Sequence record: NC_019401.1
DNA: 64,000 bases
Direction: 5' to 3' (one strand)
The notes below the pieces were generated by a model. That model did not search any database, was not told the DNA's origin, and saw only the letters and a program-made list of their open reading frames with translations. The position numbers were made by a program, and so were the translations under genes. This document shows, in pieces, positions 12,413-64,000 of the stretch (position 1 is the first letter of the stretch; the number at the start of each line of letters is the position of its first letter).

Positions 12413-12422
12413 CTATATTATC

Positions 12423-12903: not shown

Positions 12904-13029
12904 ATGTGTTAATAATATACCAGTACTTATATAATGTCAATGAAATAATTATACTTTCAAACGTGAATTTCCCCTTGCATTTATGGTTGAGTACTGTATA
13001 ATACTTGTATTGAATCGGGAGCATGAACA

Positions 13030-13275: not shown

Positions 13276-13312
13276 AGCAGGTATAGTATTCTTATTGAAA
13301 CGGAGAGATACT

Positions 13313-13513: not shown

Positions 13514-13522
13514 GGGTTTATA

Positions 13523-14380: not shown

Positions 14381-14387
14381 GTACTAC

Positions 14388-14416
14388 AAAAGCCTAGCAA
14401 TGTCTAGGCTTTTTTA
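14388..14416 (+). terminator. intrinsic terminator
   Basis: AAAAGCCTAG/CTAGGCTTTT plus T run. Confidence 0.8.
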
Positions 14417-14512
14417 TATTTCAAAAAATATACTTTCAAACGTGAAAAGTACTTGCAAAGAATCGTACAGAGTAGTATTATCTTTATATCGACAACGAAC
14501 AAGGAAAATCAA

Positions 14513-14707
14513 ATGGAACAACATTTCGTACATATCCCTAGCCCTCTGATGTTTTCGAGAGACGCTAGATTGTCTCGCATTAAGTACTTGAAAAAGGCAA
14601 AGGCAAGTACTGATAAAGAAGGCCGTAAATGGAACTTCACTATGGCGAAGATGATGAAACGCCATGAGAAACAATGGATGGAAACTTATCAGCAGGAATA
14701 CATGTAA
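14513..14707 (+). CDS. hypothetical basic protein
   Basis: AAGGA RBS in repeated cassette; start reassigned. Confidence 0.7.
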   Translation: MEQHFVHIPSPLMFSRDARLSRIKYLKKAKASTDKEGRKWNFTMAKMMKRHEKQWMETYQQEYM

Positions 14708-14716
14708 ACATTATCA

Positions 14717-14753
14717 AAAGTACTTTGACAAATATGTTAGAGTACTTTATAAT
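14717..14753 (+). promoter_or_regulatory. AGTACT-paired promoter B8
   Basis: TTGACA-17-TATAAT, AGTACT at 14719 and 14741. Confidence 0.8.
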
Positions 14754-14784
14754 GATTATATCAAAAAACGAACTGGTGATTATT

Positions 14785-15021
14785 ATGGTTATCGAACATA
14801 ATGCATATATTCCAAAAGCAGTACGCCAAGCTTTTGATATGGTGAAGCGTGTGTATCCCAACGTTACACAAGTCGAATATGATGATAACGGTAATTGGCT
14901 TTACTCTGACGGCAAAAGCTTTTTTCCTTCATTCAATAATATTAATATTGATGTTGGAGTACTTGAACACGCCGCTGATGCCGCCTATAATGTAGGCATT
15001 CCAGTTACGTTTAAAATTTAA
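14785..15021 (+). CDS. hypothetical early protein
   Basis: Start reassigned downstream of promoter B8. Confidence 0.7.
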   Translation: MVIEHNAYIPKAVRQAFDMVKRVYPNVTQVEYDDNGNWLYSDGKSFFPSFNNINIDVGVLEHAADAAYNVGIPVTFKI

Positions 15022-15033
15022 AAAGGTAATTGT

Positions 15034-15321
15034 ATGCCGTCAATGTTCAGAAATTCAAAGAAGGTACAGACTGCATTAAAAGTAATGGATATTGTTAAAA
15101 CAAAAAACAATACCAACAATGCACCAACTTCTAAAACAAAGAAAGTAAAATCTACTAAGCAAAGTACTGTAGTTACTCTTTCTGTTATGATACAATTCCT
15201 GAAAGATAACGATGGCGATTTAGATTTGCTTTACAAAACATATGTTGGCGATCTTGAATATCGCAAACAGATGGCTGATGAAGCATATATGTTGTTCAAA
15301 AAGAATTTGAATAGCATTTAA
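15034..15321 (+). CDS. hypothetical protein
   Basis: AAGG RBS. Confidence 0.7.
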   Translation: MPSMFRNSKKVQTALKVMDIVKTKNNTNNAPTSKTKKVKSTKQSTVVTLSVMIQFLKDNDGDLDLLYKTYVGDLEYRKQMADEAYMLFKKNLNSI

Positions 15322-15357
15322 AAAGTACTTGCATTATCAATCACAGTACTATATAAT
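15321..15357 (+). promoter_or_regulatory. AGTACT-paired promoter B9
   Basis: TTGCAT-17-TATAAT, AGTACT at 15324 and 15345. Confidence 0.75.
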
Positions 15358-15383
15358 AATTATATTCAACTGAGGAAATAATC

Positions 15384-15575
15384 ATGAGTAGACGATTTAG
15401 TTATGCAGCGAAAGCTGATGGTGGTTATCAAGTACTGTTTGAAGGTACTGTAATTGATAATGCAAGTACTGTCAAAGAAGCACGTAATAAAATTGCAAAG
15501 ATAAAACGTGATGCAAAGCACAGTAATTTAGTTAATAAGTTTTTTAGTTACAGCAAAGATTTTAAACAAAAATAA
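15384..15575 (+). CDS. hypothetical early protein (paralog-like to 11753..11956)
   Basis: GAGG RBS; FEGT..EA...IAK motif. Confidence 0.75.
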   Translation: MSRRFSYAAKADGGYQVLFEGTVIDNASTVKEARNKIAKIKRDAKHSNLVNKFFSYSKDFKQK

Positions 15576-15636
15576 CTTGCATTAAACCTGAATAGAAAGT
15601 ATAATCTTTATATCAACCAAACAGAAGGGATATACC

Positions 15637-16002
15637 ATGAAAGCAGTTTACTTTGCAACCAGAACTCTCGCTCGCAACGCTGTTGAAGAACTGAACGGTA
15701 AGTTCAAAGATTTTGGTACTGACGCCCCGAAAGGTGAACGCTGGGCAGTGCTGGTGGAAGAAACTGTACAGAACAATCAACTGTCTGTACAGGAAGAAAT
15801 TAACACTGCTCCCACAACTCCGGTACAGCAGATCACTGAAAGTCTTATTGACTATTCAGAAGCAATCACAGTACTGGATCGTCCGGGTTCCATTATTGGG
15901 GAACAAACTTTACGTACCCCAAATAACAAGCCTGTACGTACTTTGTGGCGTCGTAACAAAACGGCAATGCGTTTGGCTGCTCATATGGAAGCAACCGCTT
16001 AA
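15637..16002 (+). CDS. hypothetical early protein
   Basis: AAGGG RBS, host-like codon bias. Confidence 0.8.
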   Translation: MKAVYFATRTLARNAVEELNGKFKDFGTDAPKGERWAVLVEETVQNNQLSVQEEINTAPTTPVQQITESLIDYSEAITVLDRPGSIIGEQTLRTPNNKPVRTLWRRNKTAMRLAAHMEATA

Positions 16003-16010
16003 AACTCGGT

Positions 16011-16037
16011 TGGGGCATTATATGATGCCCCTTTTTT
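16011..16037 (+). terminator. intrinsic terminator
   Basis: GGGGCAT/ATGCCCC plus T run. Confidence 0.8.
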
Positions 16038-16050
16038 AAGGTTAATCCAT

Positions 16051-16293
16051 ATGAAAAAGTTAACAATTGATAATACACAATTGCGTGTGCATTTCAAAGC
16101 AAGTACTAAAATACTTGATAGAGCATTACGTGTTGTGAAAGATTTCAATAGTGGGCAAATAAGACCGCGAAGATTAGGTTGTGGATTGTTTGAAGTTCTG
16201 GATGTTTCGCGTAACGAAAGAATCGTTATTAAAGATCGCAAACTTAATCTAATGACGCATGAACAATATAACAAGTTCGTTGAACGCCGTTGA
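16051..16293 (+). CDS. ParE/RelE-like toxin-fold small protein
   Basis: F..G.IRPRRL..L.V...RI...LMTHEQYN matches the enterobacterial ParE-like family pattern (from memory). Confidence 0.55.
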   Translation: MKKLTIDNTQLRVHFKASTKILDRALRVVKDFNSGQIRPRRLGCGLFEVLDVSRNERIVIKDRKLNLMTHEQYNKFVERR

Positions 16294-16347
16294 CAGAATC
16301 CCCTAAATATGAATATAATAAATTTATAGTCATTAGGGGATTTTATT

Positions 16348-16869
16348 ATGCCTGGAACATTTAGAAGTAAAAACGGGGCAACACTATCTGGACACTCAGA
16401 TAAATGGAGTAATGCTAACCGTAGTCCTAACAGTCATGATGCAGGACAAGGATCAAAAGGTAAACGCAATCAAGGAACCGGTATTCAAGGGAAACTAAAC
16501 ACTATGCCATCACAAGGCGTAGATACTTCCAAAATGAAGCCGGAACAAAAGTTAAAGTACTTTCAATCTTTAGGGTTAATGCCTGGCGTGGCTCCTGAAC
16601 CAGAACCAGAAGTTAAGCCAGAACCTGCACCAGACCAACGCAACAAAGTACAAGCTCTTACTCAAGACCTACAGAAAGTATTCGCGAACAATCCAAACTA
16701 TCTACACAGTATTGTACAGCAATTAAAAGAAGTGCCACCAGCACAATTTAAAAAAGCGGTATTCGCTGCTTACAGAGCTATGCAAGAAAGTACATCACAA
16801 CAAAATGTAGATCCTAAAGAAGTACTAACTCATATACAAGATGCAATTAATCAAAGTATATACGATTAA
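16348..16869 (+). CDS. hypothetical protein with disordered N-terminus and PEPE linker
   Basis: ORF with own promoter TTGACA-18-TATAAT. Confidence 0.75.
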   Translation: MPGTFRSKNGATLSGHSDKWSNANRSPNSHDAGQGSKGKRNQGTGIQGKLNTMPSQGVDTSKMKPEQKLKYFQSLGLMPGVAPEPEPEVKPEPAPDQRNKVQALTQDLQKVFANNPNYLHSIVQQLKEVPPAQFKKAVFAAYRAMQESTSQQNVDPKEVLTHIQDAINQSIYD

Positions 16870-16933
16870 TATTTGACAGAACAATTTTCGTCTGATAGTA
16901 TTAAGTTATCAAACACAAACAGGGTACTATCAA

Positions 16934-17278
16934 ATGAAAAGGATTATGTTAGTAGGATTGATGTTCGCATGTGTCAGTACTGTACAGGCTGAAATGCTTA
17001 CCTGTACTAGCTCGACACTTTCTTTCCGTAACAACGATGGAAGTTACTCGGAAAAGGCAGGTACTAAACTTACCGATATTTCCATTGAAGTACAGGAACA
17101 ATCGATCACTATGTACGCTGGTGGATTAGACCGCCTGGAATTCTGGAAAGATTATAATGAGTACCGCAATGATAGCGGGAAGATCGTTCGTAATGGTAGT
17201 ACTTTCTCTATGTATACTACTATTCCAACCGATACAAACAACATGCAGCCAATCAAAGTTGATTATATCTGCAAATGA
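16934..17278 (+). CDS. exported/periplasmic protein with Sec signal peptide
   Basis: MKRIMLVGLMFACVSTVQA cleavage-like motif. Confidence 0.75.
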   Translation: MKRIMLVGLMFACVSTVQAEMLTCTSSTLSFRNNDGSYSEKAGTKLTDISIEVQEQSITMYAGGLDRLEFWKDYNEYRNDSGKIVRNGSTFSMYTTIPTDTNNMQPIKVDYICK

Positions 17279-17285
17279 TTCAAAT

Positions 17286-17321
17286 AAAAGGTTGACTACG
17301 GTCGGCCTTTTTTGTTATACT
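17286..17321 (+). promoter_or_regulatory. terminator-promoter fusion cassette A4
   Basis: AAAAGGTTGAC-TACG-GTCGGCCTTTT; TTGACT-18-TATACT. Confidence 0.75.
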
Positions 17322-17330
17322 TCTTTCATT

Positions 17331-17362
17331 GGCAGATAAGCCGTTAGCCCATTGGGTGCATA
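17331..17362 (+). ncRNA. two-hairpin element E6
   Basis: GGC-AGATAA-GCC, GTTA, GCCCATTGGGTGC; about 55 nt identical to the E7 locus. Confidence 0.55.
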
Positions 17363-17527
17363 GTTGTATCCTTTTTAAGTACTTTCTACTTTGAAAATAT
17401 TATACAAAAACTTGTAATTTCTTCTTGCAGATTAATCTGAATTTGGTATTATATACACATCGAGACGGGGCAACGTCTTAGATAAACTAAGCGAGCGAGA
17501 AAGAAAATGCGGCGTAAATGAATTTAT

Positions 17528-17564
17528 AAAAGGAGTTGACAGCGGTTGACTCCTTTAGTATAAT
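17528..17564 (+). promoter_or_regulatory. terminator-promoter fusion cassette A5
   Basis: AAAGGAGTTGAC-AGCG-GTTGACTCCTTT; TTGACA-17-TATAAT. Confidence 0.7.
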
Positions 17565-17609
17565 CATCCCATTCAAACAAATGTAGTACTTTCTAAAAGG
17601 CATAATATC

Positions 17610-17837
17610 ATGAGAAACATCGTCGAAGTACTGTTTAACGCATCAAGAGAAGTTTCCGAAGAAGAACGCCAGGCTTCCGAAGTCATTAGCGATCTTTGCC
17701 AAAAGCATGAGCTTGTCTTACCTGAACAACTTATGGCTATGAATTACTTTTCAGGTATTGACTTCAATCTGATTGTATCAAAGGTTAGTACTCTTAACAC
17801 GCCGTTGATACCCGAAGCAATGTTTTATACACATTAA
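17610..17837 (+). CDS. hypothetical early protein
   Basis: AAGG RBS, promoter A5. Confidence 0.7.
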   Translation: MRNIVEVLFNASREVSEEERQASEVISDLCQKHELVLPEQLMAMNYFSGIDFNLIVSKVSTLNTPLIPEAMFYTH

Positions 17838-17845
17838 TAAGTAAT

Positions 17846-17882
17846 AAAAGGCTTGACACGTTCGAGCCTTTTTTGTTATACT
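17846..17882 (+). promoter_or_regulatory. terminator-promoter fusion cassette A6
   Basis: AAAAGGCTTGA..TCGAGCCTTTT; TTGACA-18-TATACT. Confidence 0.75.
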
Positions 17883-17891
17883 TCTTTCATT

Positions 17892-17922
17892 GGCAGATAA
17901 GCCGTTAGCCCATTGGGTGCAT
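17892..17922 (+). ncRNA. two-hairpin element E7
   Basis: GGC-AGATAA-GCC, GTTA, GCCCATTGGGTGC. Confidence 0.55.
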
Positions 17923-18055
17923 AATAGTACTAGTACTATAAGAAAATAAAAATATAAATTCAAACGAAAAAAAACTTGCATTCAAATAACAGTACTGGCA
18001 TAATACTTACATGGATTAGGGAATGGCCTTAATCATTTTAAGCGAGAATACTATC

Positions 18056-18631
18056 ATGAAATTCGAAGAACTGAACGAAGAACAAAAAGCTAGAGCAATT
18101 GAAAAACATCGCGATATCAACGTTGACTATGACGAATGGTATGATTTTGTAAAAGAAGAACATCATTCTAAACTGGAAGAAGTTGGTTTTTCTGGTGTAG
18201 AGTCTGCATATTCTGGATTCTGGTCACAAGGTGACGGTGCAAGTTTTACTGCTGATAGCCTGGATATTGAGAAGTTTTTACGTGCAACTAAACGCTGGAC
18301 TTATTATCGTCCGTTGCATGAAATGATCCGTATTAATGAAATATGGGCTAAAGTAGTTCGTACTACTCACCGCTACTGTCACGAAAACACAACTCAAGCA
18401 GAGTTACACGGTGAACATTACCTTAATTTAACATCGCGTCAAGAATCTTTGTATGAAGAACTTGAAAAGGAAATTGATGAATATATCACACGTGCAGGTC
18501 AAGAGTACTATCGCGATCTGAATACTGCATATGATGATTTAACTTCTGACGAACAAGTTAAACTATCAATCATTGCAAATGATATGGACTTTGAAGAAGA
18601 CCCACGTGAATCAGGCATAACTTATCTTTGA
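18056..18631 (+). CDS. conserved MGE protein (family often auto-annotated as antitoxin of toxin-antitoxin stability system)
   Basis: F.EL.EEQK.RA..W..YSGFWSQGDGASF..Y..LTSDEQV..IIAND.DF pattern; start reassigned. Confidence 0.75.
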   Translation: MKFEELNEEQKARAIEKHRDINVDYDEWYDFVKEEHHSKLEEVGFSGVESAYSGFWSQGDGASFTADSLDIEKFLRATKRWTYYRPLHEMIRINEIWAKVVRTTHRYCHENTTQAELHGEHYLNLTSRQESLYEELEKEIDEYITRAGQEYYRDLNTAYDDLTSDEQVKLSIIANDMDFEEDPRESGITYL

Positions 18632-18640
18632 CAAGTACTC

Positions 18641-18678
18641 AAAGGGGATTGACTAGTTCAATCCCTTTGTTGTATAAT
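18641..18678 (+). promoter_or_regulatory. terminator-promoter fusion cassette A7
   Basis: GGGATTGA-CTAGT-TCAATCCC; TTGACT-18-TATAAT. Confidence 0.7.
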
Positions 18679-18698
18679 AACAATACGGAGACAATAGA

Positions 18699-18797
18699 AT
18701 GGTTGAGTATACAACTATCAATCCGGTATATGAAGAAGGGAAAGCAATGAACAAAATTGCTTTATGTTTTATACTTTTTATAGTACTTTTATTATGA
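18699..18797 (+). CDS. possible 32-aa membrane peptide
   Basis: GGAG RBS after promoter A7; MVEYTTINPVYEEGKAMNKIALCFILFIVLLL. Confidence 0.35.
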   Translation: MVEYTTINPVYEEGKAMNKIALCFILFIVLLL

Positions 18798-18945
18798 GAC
18801 TACTTAAACAGCATAGCGAAGTATCTTTGTATAGTAGTATGGGATTGTTTTTAGTATCAAAAGGCCGGACAAAAATAACTTGCAAAAGTGGTGTAACTGC
18901 ATTATACTTCTTTCATCAACTAACCAATATTAAGTGAGTACTGAA

Positions 18946-19278
18946 ATGAGAAAACCTAACGTAGAAATTCTTTGTGATTCACATCACGGAATTTATATTC
19001 CGTCTATCATGATTCAACGTCTGGTAGATAATGGCTGGCGTAACATTCCTGATGATGCAGTTGAAATTCTCAAAGATCCTAATCATGAATGTTATTGGGA
19101 AACGTGGCAAGAAGTACTGGACAATGCTGAATGGCATGATGCAAGTACTAGCCAGGTTTTCAAACTGCATCATGACGGCGATCTGTTTGCAGTATGCCCT
19201 GAAAGTTGTACGCCACAAGAGTATCATCATATCTATGGTGAATATCCTGAATGGTACAACCAGGAAGAAGAAGTATGA
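18946..19278 (+). CDS. conserved phage hypothetical early protein
   Basis: HHGIYIP..YWETWQEVLDNA..HDGDLFA pattern. Confidence 0.8.
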   Translation: MRKPNVEILCDSHHGIYIPSIMIQRLVDNGWRNIPDDAVEILKDPNHECYWETWQEVLDNAEWHDASTSQVFKLHHDGDLFAVCPESCTPQEYHHIYGEYPEWYNQEEEV

Positions 19279-19411
19279 TCCAGTATTGGTGGCTTGAGCC
19301 AGTACTCTATCTGATTGTAGCACTCACCGCATTATATGTAGTTGTTACAATCTTTGGTTAAATTCAAAAAGTACTTGACTCCGGTCAGGTACTTTGCTAT
19401 TATGTATACAT

Positions 19412-19445
19412 AGCAAGAACAATGCTTTAGCCCATAGGGTGCAGC
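19412..19445 (+). ncRNA. two-hairpin element E8
   Basis: TTGACT promoter at about 19375; AGCA-AGAACAA-TGCT, TTA, GCCCATAGGGTGCAG (same hairpin 1 as E5-). Confidence 0.55.
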
Positions 19446-19565
19446 AGTGTAGCTATAGTATAAGGATGTAACTGAAACAAATATAAAGTTAAATGAAAAA
19501 TCCCCTTGCTTTCTTTCTTTCGTGTGGTATACTTTAATTATTGAAACAGAGCGGAGTAGAAAGAA

Positions 19566-19808
19566 ATGGAAAAGTCTGGAATTGAATTTAAAGTCCGTAA
19601 GTGGTCTGAACATGGTGCTCGCCGCCCATTCGACGTGGTAGCACTGGATCACGACAACAACAAACAGCACTACCAGCCAGGCTGCACTTTCAGTACTGAA
19701 GATGGGGCAAAGCGTCATCAGGCAATACTGGAAAAACGTATTAAAGATGTACCAAACAGTATTAAGTTTATTCGTGACTGCTGGCCTGTAGACGGCGGTA
19801 TTGAATAA
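19566..19808 (+). CDS. hypothetical early protein
   Basis: GGAG RBS and own promoter. Confidence 0.75.
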   Translation: MEKSGIEFKVRKWSEHGARRPFDVVALDHDNNKQHYQPGCTFSTEDGAKRHQAILEKRIKDVPNSIKFIRDCWPVDGGIE

Positions 19809-19833
19809 AGATTTAAATAAAGATTCAAATGAA

Positions 19834-19870
19834 AAAAGTACTAGACAAAAACGATTTAGTACTTTATAAT
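19834..19870 (+). promoter_or_regulatory. AGTACT-paired promoter B10
   Basis: TAGACA-17-TATAAT, AGTACT at 19837 and 19858. Confidence 0.7.
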
Positions 19871-19899
19871 TTAAAAACTAAATGAGTGGAGACACGAAA

Positions 19900-20787
19900 A
19901 TGTTAAAATTATACAAAGGTATTAACGGCCTGGCACTGAAATCAAATCGCCCTCTTAACAGAGCGGAACTTCTGGAAGTAGTCCCTTCTATCTTTGCAAT
20001 TGAAGGGCATTCTTCACGTAGCTCCCGTTTCGCACCAGTTGCAACGATTGATGTACTGGATCGCCTGGCACAAGAAAACTACTTTCCGATGTTTGCTATT
20101 CAGTCGCAAACACGCGATGCATCAAAACGCGATTATACTAAACATATGATCCGTTTGCGTCAGCCGGGTAAGCAGGAAGGTGAAGCAAACGAAATCATCC
20201 TGGTAAACGCCAATGATGGCACAAGTGCATATCAGTTGATGGCAGGTCAATTCCGTTTTGTATGTTCTAACGGTTTAGTTATGGGTGATATGTCTCATAA
20301 CACGAAGATCTACCACAAAGGCACTGACATTATGGACGATGTTATTGAAGGTGTTTACACGGTGGTTAAAGACTTTGATGAAATCGAACGCTACAAAAAG
20401 GAAATGAAGCAGATTCAACTTAGTACTGAACAACGCGATTCCTTTGCAATCGCCGCCTATATCATGAAAGAAGGTTTACCGGAAAACGGCGATTGGGCGA
20501 ACGCAGTATATCAGCCACGAGCATTACTTTCTACGAAAGACCTGAACACGCTGGATCGTTATGATAACAGTCTGTACAGTACTTTTAACACTGTACAGCA
20601 ACATATGATGGCTGGTGGGCAACGTGGCTATAATCCACATACTGGCCGCCGTCGCTCAAGTCGTGAAGTAACGAACATCGACAAAAACATTGATCTGAAT
20701 AGTACGTTGTGGCGTACTGCGATGAAAATGGTAGACCAATATAGTCTACTGAAAAACGCAGAACCTGAAGAATTAATTCAGTTCTAA
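19900..20787 (+). CDS. DUF932 (DUF945/YubP-like) protein
   Basis: PSIFA..HSSRS.RF..T..L..E.YFP..QS.TRD..KR.YTKHMIRLR; NANDGTSAYQLMAGQFRFVCSNGLV; LYSTFNTVQ. Confidence 0.88.
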   Translation: MLKLYKGINGLALKSNRPLNRAELLEVVPSIFAIEGHSSRSSRFAPVATIDVLDRLAQENYFPMFAIQSQTRDASKRDYTKHMIRLRQPGKQEGEANEIILVNANDGTSAYQLMAGQFRFVCSNGLVMGDMSHNTKIYHKGTDIMDDVIEGVYTVVKDFDEIERYKKEMKQIQLSTEQRDSFAIAAYIMKEGLPENGDWANAVYQPRALLSTKDLNTLDRYDNSLYSTFNTVQQHMMAGGQRGYNPHTGRRRSSREVTNIDKNIDLNSTLWRTAMKMVDQYSLLKNAEPEELIQF

Positions 20788-20794
20788 GTCAAAT

Positions 20795-20830
20795 TGGGGG
20801 TTGACAACGATTAGCCCCCTAAGCTATACT
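20795..20830 (+). promoter_or_regulatory. terminator-promoter fusion cassette A8
   Basis: GGGGGTTGA..TTAGCCCCC; TTGACA-18-TATACT. Confidence 0.7.
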
Positions 20831-20863
20831 TGCATTTGACAACGTAAACGGAGTAACGGAACC

Positions 20864-21202
20864 ATGAGCATGAATTTTTTCATCATGACCAGTACAACGC
20901 AAGACGGTCACACCGAGTACGGCAAAACTGAATACGTTATCGTAGGTCAGGATAAAGCGGGCCGCCGTTTCCGCCTTGATACTTCTGTATTATACAATGA
21001 CGATAAAACAGACCGTGAATGCCGCGATATTCAAAATCGTCGTATTATGCGTATGCTGCAAAGTATCGCGTATGGTCAGAAGATCGATATGCAATTCTGG
21101 AAAGAAATCGAACCTGCATACGAATCTGAGGCGTTTTATAAGTTAGATACTAAGCAACGCATGAAGATCGAACAGGAACATGTCGATATGTATGGCGTTT
21201 AA
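20864..21202 (+). CDS. hypothetical early protein (paralog of 21787..22134)
   Basis: KTEY.IV....G.R.RL..W.EI.P.Y.S shared. Confidence 0.8.
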   Translation: MSMNFFIMTSTTQDGHTEYGKTEYVIVGQDKAGRRFRLDTSVLYNDDKTDRECRDIQNRRIMRMLQSIAYGQKIDMQFWKEIEPAYESEAFYKLDTKQRMKIEQEHVDMYGV

Positions 21203-21227
21203 CTTATAGTACTGCGTAACGTAATAC

Positions 21228-21258
21228 AAGGGCAACCATTCAACGGTTGCCCTTTTTT
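21228..21258 (+). terminator. intrinsic terminator
   Basis: AAGGGCAACC/GGTTGCCCTT plus T run. Confidence 0.85.
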
Positions 21259-21465
21259 AATTCATTTTTTTTTAAATTAACACTTGACAAATCAAATTTA
21301 ATAATAATTTGTACAAACCTATACACGAGTACTGTACAATTTTTTTATATTTTTCAGATAATTATGTGATGCAAGTTTTGTAAATGATGCTAAGGAACGA
21401 TTGACAGGCATAGGATAATTCCGATACAATAGCCCTAAGTTAACAAGCGAAGCGAGTATAATAAT

Positions 21466-21687
21466 ATGAGTAGTTCAGTTAATAGCAGTGAATTGGAAGC
21501 ATTGAAAATCCGTTGGTATCAATTAGCCATTGAAGGCAAGCCAGTGATCGGCGAAGATGAAAAGTTGTTCAACTCCCTCCCCCGCTACGTTCAAGAGGAA
21601 CTAAAGAAGGCATATCTTTTCGGCGTGAACGATGAATGCGAAACCTGGATGATCCCACAACAAGTAACGGCAAAAGTCAAAAACTAA
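21466..21687 (+). CDS. hypothetical early protein (paralog of 22592..22768)
   Basis: L..L...WY.L..EG..I.G.D..LFNSL....EL..AY..G shared. Confidence 0.8.
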   Translation: MSSSVNSSELEALKIRWYQLAIEGKPVIGEDEKLFNSLPRYVQEELKKAYLFGVNDECETWMIPQQVTAKVKN

Positions 21688-21718
21688 TCCAGTACTATCA
21701 CGCATATAAACATACTCC

Positions 21719-21754
21719 AGGGGGTTGACTTTGGTCAGCCCTTTTTGCTATACT
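21719..21754 (+). promoter_or_regulatory. terminator-promoter fusion cassette A9
   Basis: GGGTTGAC-TTTG-GTCAGCCC plus T run; TTGACT-18-TATACT. Confidence 0.75.
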
Positions 21755-21786
21755 TCTATTACACCAAAGCAAGAGAGTACAAAACC

Positions 21787-22134
21787 ATGTTAGACGTTTA
21801 TATCAGAAGTGATTTAGTATCAGATGGCGTTGATGAATGCGGTACTCCAAAAGAAAAGACAGAGTACTACATCGTAGCAGAATCTGAAACAGGTCAGCGT
21901 ATCAGATTGGAAAATGCTTCTATCGTGAACCGCGATTTTTCCGATGAACAATGTGTCGCGTACTTAGAACCAACAGTTAATAAAATCAAAAATCATTTGG
22001 CTGGTGGCGGTAAACTTAATCCAGATCTATGGTACGAAATCGATCCATGCTACGGGTCACAACGTTACATGGATTTAGATAGTTCTGGCTTCTTCTACCA
22101 CCGCGAGAAACGAGAAGATACCTATCGCAATTAA
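21787..22134 (+). CDS. hypothetical early protein (paralog of 20864..21202)
   Basis: Start reassigned downstream of promoter A9. Confidence 0.8.
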   Translation: MLDVYIRSDLVSDGVDECGTPKEKTEYYIVAESETGQRIRLENASIVNRDFSDEQCVAYLEPTVNKIKNHLAGGGKLNPDLWYEIDPCYGSQRYMDLDSSGFFYHREKREDTYRN

Positions 22135-22336
22135 GTAAACACCAATTCAAGAAAATTTCGAGTACTTGTCAAATCAAATACAAGTATTCGAAAATTTAGT
22201 TTAGTGTCGAGTACTTGTATAAATTTTCGCGTATGCACCAGCGTATACATATATGCACATATAATGCGTAATATGTACTTGCATACGCCTACACATACAT
22301 GTATACTATCATTGTCAACTACAGAGGATCTATATC

Positions 22337-22531
22337 ATGAATGCACAAATTAGACTCTTAGCGAATCAAGTACTGAACAAACGTTACTTGGGCATTGAAG
22401 AAGCAATGGAGCGTATCATCGGCAAATACACTGAACAAAACGCTGATGTACACGCCGCCGTATTCAATGAGATTCAAGATATTCTGAATCCTCATGGTAC
22501 TGGTGAAGATGAAGTTTATTGCGAAAGTTAA
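22337..22531 (+). CDS. hypothetical early protein
   Basis: GAGG RBS. Confidence 0.75.
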   Translation: MNAQIRLLANQVLNKRYLGIEEAMERIIGKYTEQNADVHAAVFNEIQDILNPHGTGEDEVYCES

Positions 22532-22591
22532 TTTGACAACGCGATGTAAGTACTGATATACTTACTACACATTAATCGAGAGGGTAACAAC

Positions 22592-22768
22592 ATGGTACAG
22601 GTAGACTTAGCAGAACTCAGAACTAAATGGTACAACCTGGGGAAAGAAGGTACTGAAATCTCAGGTGATGATGCAGTACTGTTTAACTCCCTCGATCCGT
22701 GGCAAAAGCGGGAACTCCACAATGCCTACGTTGAAGGAACTACGGAAGCCCTTGCAACCGTAGCATAA
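22592..22768 (+). CDS. 58-aa hypothetical protein (paralog of 21466..21687)
   Basis: Not in ORF track. GAGG RBS; MVQVDLAELRTKWYNLGKEGTEISGDDAVLFNSLDPWQKRELHNAYVEG. Confidence 0.8.
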   Translation: MVQVDLAELRTKWYNLGKEGTEISGDDAVLFNSLDPWQKRELHNAYVEGTTEALATVA

Positions 22769-22790
22769 CCCTAACAGGCTATCGTATCAT

Positions 22791-22822
22791 AAAAGTGTTG
22801 GCAAAGTCCAGCACTTTTTTTC
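22791..22822 (+). terminator. intrinsic terminator
   Basis: AAAAGTGTTGG/CCAGCACTTTT plus T run. Confidence 0.75.
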
Positions 22823-22880
22823 GTTTTTAAGCAAATAAATTCCTTGACCTTCCCTGCGATATTTGAGAGAATACCCACAA

Positions 22881-22912
22881 GCCAGAACAAAGGCGTAGCC
22901 CACAGGGTGCAT
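22881..22912 (+). ncRNA. two-hairpin element E9+
   Basis: TTGACC promoter; GCC-AGAACAAA-GGC, GTA, GCCCACAGGGTGC. Confidence 0.55.
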
Positions 22913-22952
22913 AGGCACGTCCAAAATTCAGTACTCAAATTTTAGATAGATC

Positions 22953-22985
22953 TCCACACCCTGTGGGTCAGACCGTTACACCGGT
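22953..22985 (-). ncRNA. two-hairpin element E9-
   Basis: Minus strand TTGCAT-16-TATAAT, then ACCG-GTGTAA-CGGT, CTG, ACCCACAGGGTGTGG. Confidence 0.55.
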
Positions 22986-23167
22986 TTATGTACTTATTAT
23001 ACATCAACCACGGATCAATGCAATACCCTGGAGAAAATAAAATTATAAATTCAAACATAATATTCGCTTGAATTCTTTGTTCAGTTTGATAATATACCTA
23101 GACCAAAACAAACAACGGCAAGACTATACCGCCTAAATCGTCAGGCCGGATTATACCCAAAACCCTG

Positions 23168-23533
23168 ATGGAGTATCAAAAAATGAGATTAAGTGAGCTT
23201 CGCGGTATCCTGACAGTACTGGAATATCAGGCACATCAAAAGGGAAACATTGATCCGCTGGTGGAGTTATTCAGCGTTGAATTAGATGGCGATGTTTTCC
23301 TTACTGTAGATATTAATGCTATCCAGGCAGATCCAGCAGGTCAGTTAACCCCAGGTGGATCTATTCACCTGCCATTAAAAGAAATTACTACTCGTGGATT
23401 CGTGGTAGTGTATGGTGATAAAGGCCGTGAGGATTGTATTGTGATTCAGGCCACAAATAAGAAAGAAGCTGAAAGATTGTTCTTGAAACATTTCAGTACT
23501 TATGAACTGAAAACAATCAACGAAGAAATCTAA
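23168..23533 (+). CDS. hypothetical early protein
   Basis: ORF; start may be ATG 23183 after GGAG. Confidence 0.75.
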   Translation: MEYQKMRLSELRGILTVLEYQAHQKGNIDPLVELFSVELDGDVFLTVDINAIQADPAGQLTPGGSIHLPLKEITTRGFVVVYGDKGREDCIVIQATNKKEAERLFLKHFSTYELKTINEEI

Positions 23534-23545
23534 ATCTTTACAAAT

Positions 23546-23581
23546 CGGGGGTTGACATTAGCCCCCGAAAAATGCAATAAT
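23546..23581 (+). promoter_or_regulatory. terminator-promoter fusion cassette A10 (near-identical to A1)
   Basis: About 50-bp direct repeat of 6541-6592. Confidence 0.75.
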
Positions 23582-23589
23582 ATGATCAA

Positions 23590-23621
23590 GCCAGAAAATT
23601 GGCGTGACCCATAGGGTGCGG
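23590..23621 (+). ncRNA. two-hairpin element E10
   Basis: GCCA-GAAAAT-TGGC, GTG, ACCCATAGGGTGCGG. Confidence 0.55.
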
Positions 23622-41312: not shown

Positions 41313-41338
41313 TTGCCCCGAAATTCGGGGCATTATTT
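41313..41338 (+). terminator. intrinsic terminator
   Basis: TGCCCCGAA-A-TTCGGGGCA then T-rich. Confidence 0.65.
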
Positions 41339-41350
41339 TAAAGGATTTTT

Positions 41351-41644
41351 ATGGCTATTAATGCACGTGGTATTAGTTCTATGAAAGTAATTGTAGAGGC
41401 CAACTACATTGAAGATGGAACTACTGTTACAAAAGTAAAAGGCACTAAAGAATATACACTACGCCGAAGCATTAAGATTTATGGTGAAAATCACCGAGAA
41501 ATTAAATGTGATGAAGATTGTGTATTCCTAGTAGATAGTACTGGAAATATTAACATGATTTCACAAGATACTGAATTAGTAGCTCATGTTCATCCAGAAG
41601 ATTTAATGTATGATATACAAGATTCTTTGGAAGAAAACAAATGA
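41351..41644 (+). CDS. hypothetical protein (paralog-like to 41641..41937)
   Basis: EA..I.DGT.V.K..G...Y.L shared. Confidence 0.75.
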   Translation: MAINARGISSMKVIVEANYIEDGTTVTKVKGTKEYTLRRSIKIYGENHREIKCDEDCVFLVDSTGNINMISQDTELVAHVHPEDLMYDIQDSLEENK

Positions 41645-58327: not shown

Positions 58328-58484
58328 AATTATAATCTCCTAGAGAATCATTTATATATTAATATTTATCCAGTACAAGCCCGAAAATGTATTAATTATC
58401 ACTTGACACGAAAACAATAAGCTGCTATACTTTTCAAAGATTTATGAATTTTATATAGTTCAAAATATTTACCTGAAAATTATT

Positions 58485-58512
58485 GAAACGTAAGAAATTT
58501 TTCTGGTATAAT
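58485..58512 (+). promoter_or_regulatory. putative phage middle promoter GAAACR-N13-TGGTATAAT
   Basis: GAAACG 58485-58490, TGGTATAAT 58504-58512. Confidence 0.6.
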
Positions 58513-58520
58513 GAACACAT

Positions 58521-58568
58521 CAAGGTGAAGTAGCCTTGCAATCACAATGACTAAGGGAGTCTTAGATT
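58521..58568 (+). promoter_or_regulatory. two-hairpin 5' leader of NadM-Nudix gene
   Basis: CAAGGT-GAAGTA-GCCTTG, then ACTAAGGGAGTCTTAGAT (58550-58567). Confidence 0.6.
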
Positions 58569-59666
58569 ATGAAAAATGAAAAAGTTTATGTATATATTGG
58601 TCGTTTTCAAATGGCACATGCTGGACACGAAGCGACAATCAAACATGCACTTGAAAATGCAGACCGTTTGGTAATTCTTGTTGGCAGTTCTGAACTTGCA
58701 CGTGATCCTAAAAATCCGTTCACCTTTGAAGAACGTCACCAGGTACTGGATGCTATGAGTAGTCGTTTAGCACAGGAAGAATGGGCTAAAGGGCGTTCGG
58801 TAAAGATTAACATCTTACCAATCCACGATTACGTTTATAACAACAGCAAATGGTTGAAAGAAGTACACGAAAAAGTCAAATCTGTAACCAGTTCTTCAAA
58901 TATCTTTATCACTGGTTGTCAGAAAGAAGCTGATGAAAGTACTTTCTATCTGAACTTCTTCCCACAATGGCAACAGGATTTTATTTCTGAGCAAAAAGTA
59001 ATGTCTTTAGATACTCGTGGTGTTCCAACTCCAATGAGTACTATCAACAGTACTGAAATGCGTAATCAATTCTTCAGTACTAAACAAATTCCTGAAGAAC
59101 TGCCAGAAGAAACCAAAGAGTTTCTACAGAAGTTTATGCACACTAAACCAATTGTGTTTGATACGTTGATTGGTGAATTTAATTTCGTACAACGTTATCG
59201 TGCACAAATGAAAGAACAACTACCATATGACAACATTCCGTTCTTAACTGGCGATTCAATGGTCGTATGTGCTGGTCATGTTCTTGTAGTTAAACGCCGC
59301 ACTTTCCCAGGTAAAGGTTTATACGCACTTCCTGGTGGTTTCTTTGATGCGTGGAAAGATAAAGACCAAATTCAAACTGCACTACGCGAATTGAAAGAAG
59401 AAACGAAAATCGATGTTCCACTAAAAGTACTTGAAGGTTCAATCCGTGAAAGTATGGAATTCGGTGATTTCAATCGTTCCTTACGCTGGCGTATTATCAC
59501 CAAATGTGCTTACATCCAACTTCAGGACAATACTTTACCAAAAGTAAAAGGTGCTGATGATGCAGAAAAAGCATTCTGGATGCCACTTGGTGAAATTGTT
59601 CAGAACCGTGATAAGTTCTTTGAAGACCATCTAAGTATCATCGATACTTTCTTGGGTATTCTTTAA
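58569..59666 (+). CDS. natV: bifunctional NMN adenylyltransferase / Nudix ADP-ribose pyrophosphatase (NadM-Nudix)
   Basis: IGRFQ..H.GH, KNPFTFEER, STEMR; Nudix box PGGF...ALRELKEET; DDAEKAFW; FFEDH. Confidence 0.93.
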   Translation: MKNEKVYVYIGRFQMAHAGHEATIKHALENADRLVILVGSSELARDPKNPFTFEERHQVLDAMSSRLAQEEWAKGRSVKINILPIHDYVYNNSKWLKEVHEKVKSVTSSSNIFITGCQKEADESTFYLNFFPQWQQDFISEQKVMSLDTRGVPTPMSTINSTEMRNQFFSTKQIPEELPEETKEFLQKFMHTKPIVFDTLIGEFNFVQRYRAQMKEQLPYDNIPFLTGDSMVVCAGHVLVVKRRTFPGKGLYALPGGFFDAWKDKDQIQTALRELKEETKIDVPLKVLEGSIRESMEFGDFNRSLRWRIITKCAYIQLQDNTLPKVKGADDAEKAFWMPLGEIVQNRDKFFEDHLSIIDTFLGIL

Positions 59667-59672
59667 TAGTTT

Positions 59673-59698
59673 TGGAGTACTTCGGTACTCCAATTTTT
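59673..59698 (+). terminator. intrinsic terminator
   Basis: TTGGAGTAC-TTCG-GTACTCCAA plus T run. Confidence 0.88.
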
Positions 59699-59712
59699 AA
59701 GTAAGAGGGATT

Positions 59713-60228
59713 ATGTTGTACTGTCAACCGGAAAGTTTTTACAATGAAATGAAATATATTTCTGATAATAAAGAAGACTTTCCAAAGAAACTAAAAGCTG
59801 CGAATTACAATATACCAAATGAACTTTCAAATATCGACCCTATATCATTTTTGATTAAAATGGTATTAACTGAACCTGAACCTGATGAGAATTCTATATA
59901 TGCACTAAGAACGTATGGCACTTACAATTCAACTCAGGTTAACAGTACTGATAGGATAATGCAGGTATATTACGCAACAGTGAGTGATGGTTGTCTTTTT
60001 GTATCTAATCCAAGCGTTGCAAGTATTACATTTGAAGATTCTAAAATGTATTTTACATCATCTGATGAATACGGTGATGAGTACTGGTTTACATTGGAAG
60101 ATATAGCAGAAAATAAACATAATAATCCTTATGCAGAAAGTTCGTACATACGGTACGGAAAAGATATTTTTAATCCTAATAATTTAATGGCTAAAATACC
60201 ACTTAATTTATTACAGAATTTGGTATAA
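59713..60228 (+). CDS. hypothetical protein
   Basis: GAGG RBS. Confidence 0.75.
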   Translation: MLYCQPESFYNEMKYISDNKEDFPKKLKAANYNIPNELSNIDPISFLIKMVLTEPEPDENSIYALRTYGTYNSTQVNSTDRIMQVYYATVSDGCLFVSNPSVASITFEDSKMYFTSSDEYGDEYWFTLEDIAENKHNNPYAESSYIRYGKDIFNPNNLMAKIPLNLLQNLV

Positions 60229-60239
60229 CCAAAATAACC

Positions 60240-60287
60240 GAAAGCGTTGTAGCTTTCATAAAACTTAATACTAAGGGAGTCTTAGAT
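60240..60287 (+). promoter_or_regulatory. two-hairpin 5' leader of NAMPT gene
   Basis: TGGTATAAC at 60221; GAAAGC-GTTGTA-GCTTTC, then ACTAAGGGAGTCTTAGAT (60270-60287). Confidence 0.6.
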
Positions 60288-61775
60288 ATGAACACAATTA
60301 TTAATGACAATGTAAACTTTATTCTCAACGTTGATTCTTACAAAACTGGTCACGGCTTTATGATGAAAGAGGGTGTTGTAGCTCTTGAATCAAATATCAT
60401 TGCTCGTAAACCATCTAAGTACACGACTCATGTTGTAATGGCTGGTCTTCAGTACTACATTCAGAAGTACTTGAATATTACCATTACCGTTGATGATATT
60501 GATGAAGCAGAACTTGAAACAGAACAACGTGGCGATGATTTTGATCGCGGCTTTTGGGAACATATTGTTGAAGTACATGGTGGTAAAATTCCAGTACATA
60601 TTCGTGCAGTTCCAGAAGGTACTGTTGTTCCGGTTGGCTGTCCGTTGGTGCGTTCTTTCAGTACTGATCCTCGTGTTTGCGTAATCGCAAGTTATATCGA
60701 GACTCAGTTACAACGTGCAGTATGGTTCCCAACTACTGTAGCAAGTAATGCACGTAGCATTAAAGAATTTTTAGCAGATACAATGGAGCGTCATGCAGGT
60801 CATCGCTTTGTTGATTACCAGCTTCATAACTTCGGAGATCGTGGTGCGTCAAGTTTTGAATCAGCAATTCTTGCTGGTATGTCTCACGCAATGATTTTCA
60901 GTGGTTCTGACTGTTTATCTGCGAACCGTTATATTAAACGTTACTTCCACACTGATAAAGCATATTTGAGCAGTGTGACTGCAAGTGAACATAGTGCAAC
61001 ATGTTCAAACTCAGATGCGGATCGCCGCGATGATTTCAACATGGCTGTAAAAATGGTTCGTTTGTGGGAGAAGAAAGTCAATAAATTCATTGCTAATGGT
61101 TCAGTCGGTGTTCCACCAATTGTTTCCGTTGTAATTGATACTTATGATGCGTACCGTTTTGTCCGTGAATTTATGGGTACTCGTCTTAAAGCGACCATTG
61201 AAGAAATCGGCAAACGTTGCCCAGGTGCTAAATTAGTTATGCGTCCTGACAGTGGCGACCCAACTACTATGCCTATCGAAATTATCGAAATTTTGATGGA
61301 GAAATTTGGTTTCACTGTAAATGACCAAGGATATAAAGTACTTCCATCTTATATCGGTGTTATTCAGGGTGATGGTATTAACGAAGATAGCATTCGTCAA
61401 ATCGTAGCTAATCTTGATGCTAAACGTCTTTCTGTTGAAAACTTAGCATTTGGTATGGGTGGTAAACTTGTACATCCAGAAAAAGGCCGCGATACTTATA
61501 GCTTTGCTATGAAAGGTTCTGCACAGCAATTAGCTGACGGTACTTGGGAAGACCTTTTCAAAGACCCAATTACTGATGTTGGTAAACGTTCTCTCCGTGG
61601 GCGGGTAACCACTTATGAGTGCACTAATACTCATAAAATTATTGCAGAACGTATTGAACTACAAGAAGTCAATCCATTCCTACGTGATATGATGGTTGAC
61701 GTATACGTTAACGGTGAGATCATGAATCTCAGTAACTTCGATGAAGTGCGTGAGCGTGCAAACAAAGGTTTGTAA
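60288..61775 (+). CDS. nadV: nicotinamide phosphoribosyltransferase (NAMPT)
   Basis: DSYK..H; GLQYYI; WFPTTVAS; LHNFGDRG; SEHS; VIDTYD; RPDSGDP; IQGDG; FGMGG; KDP.TD.GKRS.RG. Confidence 0.96.
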   Translation: MNTIINDNVNFILNVDSYKTGHGFMMKEGVVALESNIIARKPSKYTTHVVMAGLQYYIQKYLNITITVDDIDEAELETEQRGDDFDRGFWEHIVEVHGGKIPVHIRAVPEGTVVPVGCPLVRSFSTDPRVCVIASYIETQLQRAVWFPTTVASNARSIKEFLADTMERHAGHRFVDYQLHNFGDRGASSFESAILAGMSHAMIFSGSDCLSANRYIKRYFHTDKAYLSSVTASEHSATCSNSDADRRDDFNMAVKMVRLWEKKVNKFIANGSVGVPPIVSVVIDTYDAYRFVREFMGTRLKATIEEIGKRCPGAKLVMRPDSGDPTTMPIEIIEILMEKFGFTVNDQGYKVLPSYIGVIQGDGINEDSIRQIVANLDAKRLSVENLAFGMGGKLVHPEKGRDTYSFAMKGSAQQLADGTWEDLFKDPITDVGKRSLRGRVTTYECTNTHKIIAERIELQEVNPFLRDMMVDVYVNGEIMNLSNFDEVRERANKGL

Positions 61776-61780: not shown

Positions 61781-61806
61781 AGGGGGCTTTATGCCCCCTT
61801 CTTTTT
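61781..61806 (+). terminator. intrinsic terminator
   Basis: AGGGGGC-TTTAT-GCCCCCT plus T run. Confidence 0.8.
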
Positions 61807-63624: not shown

Positions 63625-63861
63625 ATGAAAAACGACAAAGACTTAACCAAAAATGAAAAACGGCTTTATAGTGGTTCTTGGGTTGATGAGCAAGAAAACG
63701 CTAAAAAAAATGTGGTATGTACTCGTTGTTTTTCAACATACTTTCTCCAATCAGCACCGAGGACTGTACCCGGTACTGATGGATATTATACAAAGGAGCC
63801 TCAATGTCCGAATTGTGGTTGCCGACTATATTTTACGCATTTAACAGGGAAACATGAATGA
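63625..63861 (+). CDS. Zn-ribbon protein
   Basis: CTRC...CPNC. Confidence 0.7.
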   Translation: MKNDKDLTKNEKRLYSGSWVDEQENAKKNVVCTRCFSTYFLQSAPRTVPGTDGYYTKEPQCPNCGCRLYFTHLTGKHE

Positions 63862-64000
63862 ACCTAAATGGTTTTTTATCTAATAATGGGATTCCACGAC
63901 TAATTTTTTGTACTGGTGCTGGACTTTCAAAAGAATCTGGTATTCAGACTTTCCGTGATGCGGCTGGTGAAGGTCTATGGGATGATGTAAGTATTGATGA
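63858..64000 (+). CDS. Sir2/CobB-family NAD-dependent deacylase, partial
   Basis: Not in ORF track. MNLNGFLSNNGIPRLIFCTGAGLSKESGIQTFRDAAGEGLW. Confidence 0.9.
   Translation, partial: MNLNGFLSNNGIPRLIFCTGAGLSKESGIQTFRDAAGEGLWDDVSID

Follow-up and report, generated by a model that had tools for sequence, protein, structure and literature searches.

A conserved two-hairpin RNA leader before the NAD-salvage genes of Cronobacter phage vB_CsaM_GAP32, other phages and a few gammaproteobacteria

Why do two phage genes that are separated by a terminator and a third gene begin with the same 18 nucleotides? The question was raised by a 64,000-nucleotide stretch of sequence record NC_019401.1 (hereafter the window), which covers bases 1-64000 of the 358,663-bp genome of Cronobacter phage vB_CsaM_GAP32 (GAP32; JN882285), a RaK2-like jumbo phage of the genus Mimasvirus. 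The two genes, GAP32_112 and GAP32_114, encode a NadM-Nudix protein and NAMPT, both of the salvage pathway for nicotinamide adenine dinucleotide (NAD). An initial annotation of the window had read the shared leader as a sign of coordinated post-transcriptional control of this pathway. Comparison with other genomes indicated that the GAP32 sites belong to a conserved family of cis-regulatory RNA leaders, apparently undescribed and dedicated to NAD-salvage genes of phages and a few gammaproteobacteria. That this is a real, pathway-specific RNA element is considered very probable; the whole reading, in which a trans-acting factor additionally controls translation of a NAD-salvage regulon through the element, is judged to be evenly balanced between right and wrong.

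The 18-mer ACTAAGGGAGTCTTAGAT was located as exact copies at 58550-58567 (before NadM-Nudix) and 60270-60287 (before NAMPT), and these were the only 2 exact occurrences in the 358,663-bp genome. Its end is separated from the ATG by 1 nt in GAP32_112 and by 0 nt in GAP32_114. Each copy contains a hairpin (H2) with the Shine-Dalgarno (SD) sequence in its loop, and each is preceded by a 6-bp hairpin (H1) with a G..GTA loop. The parts of the two leaders are as follows.

58521 to 58538, plus strand: H1 of the NadM leader, CAAGGU-GAAGUA-GCCUUG, with a 6-bp stem, a U·G closing pair and a GWWGUA hexaloop (sequence and predicted fold).
58539 to 58550, plus strand: variable A/C/U-rich linker of the NadM leader (length and sequence differ among relatives).
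58551 to 58565, plus strand: H2 of the NadM leader, CUAAG-GGAGU-CUUAG, with the SD GGAG in the pentaloop (sequence and predicted minimum-energy fold).
60240 to 60257, plus strand: H1 of the NAMPT leader, GAAAGC-GUUGUA-GCUUUC (sequence, predicted fold and class I alignment).
60258 to 60270, plus strand: variable linker of the NAMPT leader (compared with relatives).
60271 to 60285, plus strand: H2 of the NAMPT leader, CUAAG-GGAGU-CUUAG, with the SD in the loop and a stem-to-AUG gap of 2 nt (sequence, predicted fold and covariance model).

With a bulged A, the predicted H2 helix could also take in the A and U of the start codon. No further match to the 18-mer was found in the window at up to 3 mismatches (chance expectation 0.05), nor any comparable copy in the whole genome at up to 4 mismatches; a near-match at genome position 283338 was rejected because it is not a hairpin. 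When the genome was searched with R2, a covariance model specific to leaders of the GAP32 type (class I), the two leaders scored 64.3 and 61.2 bits, and the next best site scored 20.4 bits. The description given in the initial annotation was therefore borne out on each of these points: the exact 18-mer common to both genes with the SD in the loop of CTAAG-GGAGT-CTTAG, the 6-bp hairpin upstream of each copy, and the absence of this leader from the other genes of the window.

The 20.4-bit site lies outside the window, at genome positions 144524-144557, where a weak H2-like hairpin (CUAA-GGGA-UUAG) is separated by 3 nt from the ATG of GAP32_224. Weaker R2 matches were seen at the syntenic places in phages CBB and BF, and a MutT/Nudix gene (GAP32_226) is found nearby. 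This hairpin could be a chance occurrence or a degenerate third member of the family. A promoter-coupled two-hairpin leader present in 13 copies in the window (3771-23621) was set aside as a different sequence family that has no loops in common with the NAD leader.

In Pectobacterium phage CBB, Serratia phage BF, Erwinia phages, Yersinia phage fHe-Yen9, Xanthomonas phage XbC2 and Kaldavass, each of the two genes is likewise preceded by its leader, and H2 is identical across all of these. The H1 stems of these close relatives shift by compensation (CAAGGY/GCCUUG, CAAAGC/GCUUUG and GAAAGC/GCUUUC) around a constant G-W-W-G-U-A loop. Across the class I alignment, which holds 19 sequences including RaK2 and XaC1, five of the six H1 pairs were changed on both sides and 99% of cells were paired. 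The closing pair of H1 alternates between C-G and U·G in this class, and such a wobble would be workable only in RNA of the coding strand. A compensatory change within H2 was found in the NadM leader of RaK2, where the helix is flipped (CUUAG-GGAGUA-CUAAG).

R2 was built because R1, a model derived from the main class of the wider family described below, was weak on the GAP32 leaders (17.2 and 13.5 bits) and returned noise of similar strength in the same genome (41316-41351 and 210419-210453). Strong R2 matches numbered exactly 2 per genome, both at NAD genes, in RaK2, CBB, BF and a fourth jumbo phage (the L168 contig). The R1 match at 41316-41351 of the window (19.7 bits), a hairpin CCCCGAAAUUCGGGG followed by AAAGGAUUUUU and the ATG of GAP32_078, was judged to be a generic terminator with an AU-rich SD context and not a member.

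How far does the leader extend beyond these phages? A scan of IMG/VR for exact copies of the H2 15-mer reached a 172-kb contig (L023), where the copy precedes a NadM with only 35% identity, and blastn with the leader led to NAD genes in Ochrobactrum phage OC, a Vibrio jumbo phage and XaC1, in which the same H2 stands beside a different H1 (by inspection). The layout was ultimately found in more than 100 diverse phage contigs, before NadM, NAMPT and (in one phage) PnuC, and consists of H1, a linker of about 10 nt, and H2 with the SD GGA in a 5-nt loop and its 3' arm against the AUG. The sample comprised 159 IMG/VR loci encoding NAMPT or NadM-Nudix relatives. Among 223 unique phage NadM/NAMPT leaders, H2 was present in 80% and both hairpins in 69%; the roseophage DSS3_MAL1 carries the full motif on both genes.

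In its general form, H2 is a 4-6 bp AU-rich stem with a GGANN pentaloop (GGAGU 77, GGAUU 28, GGAAC 24, GGAGA 14, GGAGC 11). Its 3' arm abuts the start codon in 62% of leaders and lies no more than 2 nt away in 89%, and its mean free energy of -1.2 kcal/mol makes it marginally stable. The closing A-U pair is nearly invariant because the 5' arm includes the A-rich beginning of an extended SD (UAAGGAG). In H1 the stem measures 6-10 bp and is followed by a G-poor linker with a median length of 10 nt; the H1 loops were G-AUAGA-C in 59 leaders, AGAGA/AGUGA in 15 and the GAP32-type GWWGUA in 15.

Model R1 was derived from 72 main-class leaders and used at a threshold of E ≤ 0.05 (model E-values are rough), and it returned 125 matches in 558 kb, all on the gene strand. 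In an alignment of these matches (A5), 89.5% of cells were paired as compared to 60.8% in shuffles, all 9 pairs were changed on both sides, and the covariation score was 0.70 as compared to 0.17 shuffled (0/500 shuffles reached 0.70). Sliding of the pairing partners collapsed the covariation signal. For H2, 100% of cells were paired, all 4 modelled pairs were changed on both sides, and UA, AU, CG and GC all occurred at the outer pair. The GGA of the H2 loop was invariant, and the G-AUAGA-C loop of H1 was retained in 87/101 sequences. The search for covariation in related phages, which the initial annotation had recommended, thus found covarying helices in the main class as well as in class I. 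The features taken to define a translational operator (a hairpin at the SD and AUG, compensated pairing, and conserved loop bases) were found together in both classes.

The tolerance of G·U pairs and the placement of all matches on the sense strand argue for an element that acts as RNA and not as DNA, which bears directly on the proposal that the inverted repeats are DNA operators for a NAD-metabolism transcription factor of the NrtR or NadR type. The leader shares with these regulons its target set (nadM-nadV, pnuC), and the regulators sense ADP-ribose or NAD through a domain derived from a NAD enzyme; bacterial nadM-nadV operons are known NrtR targets (PMC2330246), and the repeats stand close to promoters. 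The NrtR box, however, is a 21-bp palindrome with a GT-N7-AC core and the NadR box is TGTTTA-N6-TAAACA (PMC2330246), and neither consensus fits the leader. NrtR and NadR sites are DNA operators bound by helix-turn-helix proteins, whereas the NAD leader behaves as RNA: its arms covary freely with no half-site kept, its G·U pairs would fail to match on the opposite strand, all 125 R1 matches are on the coding strand, and many copies stand between cistrons. A DNA operator of either type was rejected on these grounds and is hardly credible.

Specificity was assessed by applying a strict H2 definition to all gene starts in the same loci; for the metagenomic loci, these starts had been predicted by means of a simple rule. 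The hairpin was found at 141/214 NAD gene starts (66%) vs 26/908 other starts (2.9%), and about 22 of these 26 also have H1 and precede small open reading frames (ORFs) adjoining or just upstream of NAD genes, namely phrog_33851, phrog_12218, phrog_1843 and a radical SAM enzyme. Searches of five whole phage contigs (195-518 kb) with R1 returned 2-4 sites each, all at the NAD locus. Over ten whole phage genomes the number of leader copies was likewise 2-4 each and all were at the NAD locus, with 2 each in GAP32, RaK2, CBB, BF and the L168 phage; occurrence of the same leader before many unrelated genes genome-wide, which the initial annotation had named as evidence to the contrary, was not seen in these whole genomes. 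The extra leaders of the 518-kb phage (G005) stand before PnuC, a nicotinamide-riboside/nicotinamide mononucleotide (NMN) transporter (PF04973, E 2e-37; L337:1540-2199), and before a 50-codon ORF that precedes it; both genes lie approximately 6 kb from NadM and NAMPT.

These counts also bear on whether the leader senses anything at all. As a constitutive expression module, H1 would protect the mRNA end or insulate the ribosome binding site, the linker would be a ribosome standby site, H2 would display the SD, and the unit would travel with its cassette in horizontal transfer. Such a module would be consistent with the position of H1 only 1-3 nt after the predicted transcript start in many copies, with linkers that are G-poor and variable, with an SD that is unmasked by its position in a loop, and with members that have H2 only. 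The genes are typical mobile auxiliary genes, and the leader is inherited with the gene subfamily, in that the motif is found only among closer protein relatives. A general-purpose unit should, however, serve other genes too, and the hairpin was seen at 2.9% of neighbours vs 66% of NAD genes, with 2-4 sites per genome. Many copies are also internal to operons (the bacterial nadV leader, IME-SM1), where protection of a 5' end would be senseless, and the H1 loop is conserved while the stems drift, which argues for recognition and not for stability alone. A purely constitutive role is accordingly regarded as rather unlikely.

The cassettes known as PeSL in T4-type phages (Arbiol 2010; Comeau 2014, PMC4122927) are alike in that they form compact units of promoter, stem-loop, SD and ATG before accessory genes of large phages. 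In PeSL the stem-loop lies upstream of the promoter as a terminator, and dozens of copies per genome precede unrelated ORFs (PMC4122927). Identity with PeSL was rejected, as both hairpins of the NAD leader are downstream of the -10 element within the transcript and its 2-4 copies are confined to the NAD locus.

Two families of small proteins were observed under the leader. Members of phrog_33851 (approximately 117-136 aa) stand next to phage NAD genes (L283:2072-2443, L306:2603-2974, L295:6481-6831, L275:846-1211 and L180:1049-1456) and have the motif GEDPNCD..GG.HH.P.LG....FWQWGAGG and a coiled-coil tail; searches of Pfam and the atlas gave no lead for this family. Members of phrog_12218 (approximately 105-110 aa) are encoded directly upstream of NadM (L266:2649-2972, L299:2672-3001, L294:2287-2601 and L306:2211-2537), and the NadM genes that follow have no leader of their own. 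These proteins have an N-terminal coiled coil followed by C.WNHTDGCGW.YE, a motif that may bind metal. The phrog_33851 family is a candidate member of a NAD or anti-defence regulon, and it is likely that both families and the other leader-bearing small genes are new members of such a regulon.

Is the leader restricted to phages? Of 401 sampled genomes, 9 hold a NadM-Nudix gene, and the 3 whose enzyme is closest to that of phages are those with an adjacent NAMPT. H1 with the G-AUAGA-C loop and H2 were found before both nadM and nadV in three gammaproteobacteria (G109:C21 with loci L348/L350, G292 with L349, and G305 with L351). As these are chromosomal nadM-nadV operons, the motif is not a phage-only one. 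A scan of 151 sampled gammaproteobacterial genomes with R1 gave a match in 1, before nadM on an 89-kb contig (G109:C21), where the neighbours of nadM-nadV are ordinary ATP-binding cassette (ABC) and major facilitator superfamily (MFS) transporter genes and acyl-CoA genes. No match was obtained in 151 sampled alphaproteobacterial genomes, a sample that contains no known-positive genome and so proves little. The exact H2 15-mer was tried in bacterial genomes as well and gave at least 120 matches, which is about chance for 596 Gb, with none before a NAD gene; it is for this reason uninformative outside phages.

What, then, would read the leader? One answer is a direct metabolite-sensing riboswitch, in which the two hairpins form a pocket for NAD+, NMN, ADP-ribose, nicotinamide or phosphoribosyl pyrophosphate (PRPP) and binding stabilises or releases H2, so that translation is switched off or on. 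The regulon-like distribution on three NAD-salvage gene families in phages and bacteria suits this proposal, as do the covarying stems with conserved loop nucleotides and the marginal stability of H2 (-1.2 kcal/mol), which would allow ligand-dependent switching. The G109 operon lies among transporter genes with no cassette-linked regulator gene visible, and very small two-hairpin riboswitches exist as a precedent. The H1 loop, however, is lineage-specific (AUAGA, AGWGA, GWWGUA, GGGGU), whereas a pocket for a universal metabolite should keep its contacts, and the leader has no internal loops or junctions. By eye, neither loop-loop complementarity nor a conserved pseudoknot partner was seen; kissing of the loops and base pairing between the H1 loop and the 3' arm of H2 were found by eye only in subsets and are not conserved.

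The known RNAs of this kind do not account for the leader either. The NAD+-I (nadA motif) and NAD+-II (pnuC motif) riboswitches are likewise cis-regulatory RNAs on genes of NAD biosynthesis or transport, and NAD+-II also builds in the SD, but the NAD leader differs from both in having no internal loops and no pseudoknot, in occurring in other taxa, and in having a lineage-variable loop. Searches with Rfam 15, which includes the NAD+-I and NAD+-II models, gave no match on the leaders at E ≤ 10 and none at gathering score on 20 loci, which counts against the riboswitch proposal. The guanidine-II riboswitch (mini-ykkC) resembles the leader in its two short conserved-loop hairpins, variable linker and position near the translation start. 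It was ruled out because mini-ykkC has two identical kissing ACGR loops, whereas the loops of the leader are AUAGA or GWWGUA vs GGANN and no complementarity was seen between them. A direct riboswitch of any kind is thus considered unlikely. Its specific form as a new, very small NAD-pathway class, in which the hairpins sense a NAD-related metabolite so that phages switch on the salvage pair (NARP2) upon NAD+ depletion, with use for nadM-nadV in some gammaproteobacteria, is taken to be distinctly so. No description of the leader was found in Rfam 15 or in the literature searched, and no mention of such an element was found in papers on phage NAD+ reconstitution and viral NAD systems.

The preferred reading is control by a trans-acting factor. 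In this model H2 would gate entry of the 30S subunit, as the weak helix would have to open for use of the SD and AUG; translation would go down when H2 is stabilised and up when it is released. Each cistron of the pathway has its own leader copy with its own stems and common loops, an arrangement that would allow several sites to be read by one trans-acting partner, which would set all of them as a regulon. The H1 loop differs by lineage (AUAGA, AGWGA, GWWGUA or GGGGU), and its class agrees between the leaders of one genome in approximately 21 of 23 classified pairs, with different stems. A change of the loop by lineage, in step in both leaders of a genome, favours a macromolecular partner over a universal small ligand; such a partner would be encoded with the cassette, would co-evolve with the leader and would probably be a protein. 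The simplest candidate would be one of the two enzymes, NadM-Nudix or NAMPT, which would repress its own translation and bind RNA in a manner governed by its NAD-related ligands. Autoregulation by one of these enzymes is preferred since, across phages with many different hosts and across bacteria, no genes other than nadM and nadV invariably accompany the motif.

Small operators of comparable logic are known. The phage translational operators (the MS2/Qbeta/PP7 hairpin bound between coat protein and replicase; T4 gp43, gp32 and RegA) are alike in that a small hairpin stands at the ribosome binding site, a protein reads the loop and the stem merely pairs, binding would block initiation, and operator and protein co-evolve by lineage. 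In contrast to these, the NAD leader has two hairpins, holds the SD and not the AUG in its loop, serves several cistrons of one pathway and is also found in bacterial chromosomes, and its binding protein is only postulated. The iron-responsive element (IRE) bound by IRP1 (aconitase) and the autoregulation of thymidylate synthase and DHFR mRNAs are alike in logic, in that a ligand-free enzyme binds a leader hairpin of its pathway and couples translation to the metabolite. One H1 subclass (C-AGUGA-G) resembles the CAGUGN loop of the IRE; the resemblance is one of logic only and not of homology.

A further candidate reader is a general RNA-acting factor, either a RegB-like endoribonuclease that cuts the SD GGAG, another phage RNase, or the host protein CsrA/RsmA. 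RegB cuts SD GGAG sites in T4 early mRNAs and CsrA sites have GGA in the loop of a short hairpin, usually twice per target, so that the GGAG in an exposed loop in GAP32 and the overlap of a GGA loop with the SD resemble the targets of both. About 30% of the family, however, have GGAU or GGAA instead of GGAG, H1 is without GGA (never present in the main class), and a global regulator would leave the restriction to NAD genes unexplained. A general factor as the reader is therefore very improbable.

Several observations weigh against control of a dedicated RNA element by a trans-acting partner. Folding z-scores of single leaders are weak (-1.1 to -1.7). The H1 loop is not universal, with other loops in XaC1 NadM, Ochrobactrum phage OC and the Vibrio phage, Stenotrophomonas phage IME-SM1 and Klebsiella phage Miro carry H2 only, and H1 could be a generic stabiliser. 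Among the NAD loci of cultured phages that were compared, KVP40 and CcrPW had no clear motif. The leader also occurs on genes without a known NAD link, namely the small-protein families phrog_33851 and phrog_12218, a radical SAM enzyme and phrog_1843. The concordance of loops within a genome could in part reflect shared descent of the leaders and not co-evolution with a partner. Finally, no regulator candidate was found among GAP32_113 and the small ORF families, for which Pfam, fold and family comparisons gave no lead.

When these points are set beside the comparative evidence, the two halves of the original proposal fare differently. Strong support for coordinated, pathway-specific post-transcriptional control comes from the confinement of the leader to NAD genes in every whole genome examined, from its occurrence in diverse phages and 3 bacteria, and from the covarying helices. 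Between its suggested agents, a metabolite-sensing RNA or autoregulatory binding of a protein, the evidence, which is drawn from sequence comparison, leans towards autoregulation or another protein.

Depletion of NAD+ is a common bacterial anti-phage route and is used by, for example, Thoeris, DSR, SIR2-HerA and SEFIR. The pair of NAMPT and NMN adenylyltransferase (NMNAT) that constitutes NARP2 is a proven phage countermeasure; it uses up PRPP and yields NAD+ in excess, and cloning of the KVP40 operon proved toxic (bioRxiv 10.1101/2024.02.11.579819). Autoregulation would make sense of this cost and toxicity, in that expression of the costly PRPP-consuming pathway would follow demand, as when a host defence depletes NAD+. 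For a phage counter-defence metabolic pathway, dedicated RNA control of its genes, spanning more than 100 phages and some bacteria, would be the first regulatory layer to be described. The leader is small (approximately 45-50 nt) and modular, and each of its possible identities (an enzyme-autoregulated operator, a riboswitch class, or the target of a phage RNA-binding regulator) would be new if true.

The genes, promoters and terminators surrounding the two leaders in GAP32 are as follows.

58403 to 58431, plus strand: predicted sigma-70-like promoter P1, TTGACA, 17-nt spacer and TATACT, with TG (consensus scan, 11/12 matches).
58483 to 58512, plus strand: predicted promoter P2 of the NadM leader, TTGAAA, 18-nt spacer and TATAAT, with the extended -10 TG at 58504-58505 (consensus scan).
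58569 to 59666, plus strand: GAP32_112, NadM-Nudix, a bifunctional NMN adenylyltransferase / Nudix ADP-ribose pyrophosphatase, the phage 'NatV' (Pfam PF01467 and PF00293, record annotation).
59672 to 59693, plus strand: intrinsic terminator-like hairpin after NadM, UUGGAGUAC-UUCG-GUACUCCAA, followed by a U run (scan).
59713 to 60228, plus strand: GAP32_113, a conserved hypothetical protein (phrog_25832) between NadM and NAMPT (record annotation, relatives).
60221 to 60229, plus strand: TGGTATAAC, a -10-like word and doubtful promoter (sequence; missed by the promoter scan).
60288 to 61775, plus strand: GAP32_114, NAMPT/NadV, nicotinamide phosphoribosyltransferase (Pfam PF18127 and PF04095, record annotation).
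61781 to 61799, plus strand: terminator-like hairpin after NAMPT (scan).

A promoter directly before each H1 had been proposed, and this held for one copy only. At the NadM leader, TGGTATAAT (58504-58512) is part of P2, a good predicted sigma-70 promoter that is kept in relatives; H1 begins 8 nt after its extended -10 element, and the transcript is predicted to start at approximately 58519-58520, 1-2 nt before H1 (transcript starts were inferred from the promoter consensus). At the NAMPT leader, no -35 element accompanies TGGTATAAC; this word runs into the stop codon of GAP32_113, its sequence is degenerate in relatives (TGGCATAAG in phage BF), and for these reasons this leader may be internal to a transcript.

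The terminator and additional gene that had been placed between NadM-Nudix and NAMPT were both found. The terminator at 59672-59693 is conserved in relatives, with covariation of its loop and stem. GAP32_113 has neither a leader nor a promoter of its own and starts directly after this terminator; it is retained between NadM and NAMPT in all GAP32-like relatives examined and in XaC1, and not in RaK2. Pfam and atlas searches gave no Pfam, family or fold lead for GAP32_113, and its predicted fold is of low confidence. Downstream of NAMPT by 2-3 kb are a Sir2-like gene and a further Nudix gene (GAP32_119 and GAP32_120; window 63858-64000 and beyond), both without the leader, and this downstream region is a cluster for NAD use and ADP-ribose handling.

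Many main-class NadM leaders in the environmental loci are preceded by TATAAATA, which is the T4 late promoter consensus (for example L308:2900-2975 and L254:2900-2985), sometimes in tandem with a sigma-70-type promoter; this suggests that the NAD genes of these loci are transcribed both early and late. A separate observation from T4-like environmental phage loci in IMG/VR is the gene junction AACATTTCGGAGTTGAAGAATG, which recurs before many small ORFs (for example at L270:4693, L286:4243, L292:5056 and L306:5195) and resembles a site where one ORF's conserved end overlaps with the SD and start of its successor.

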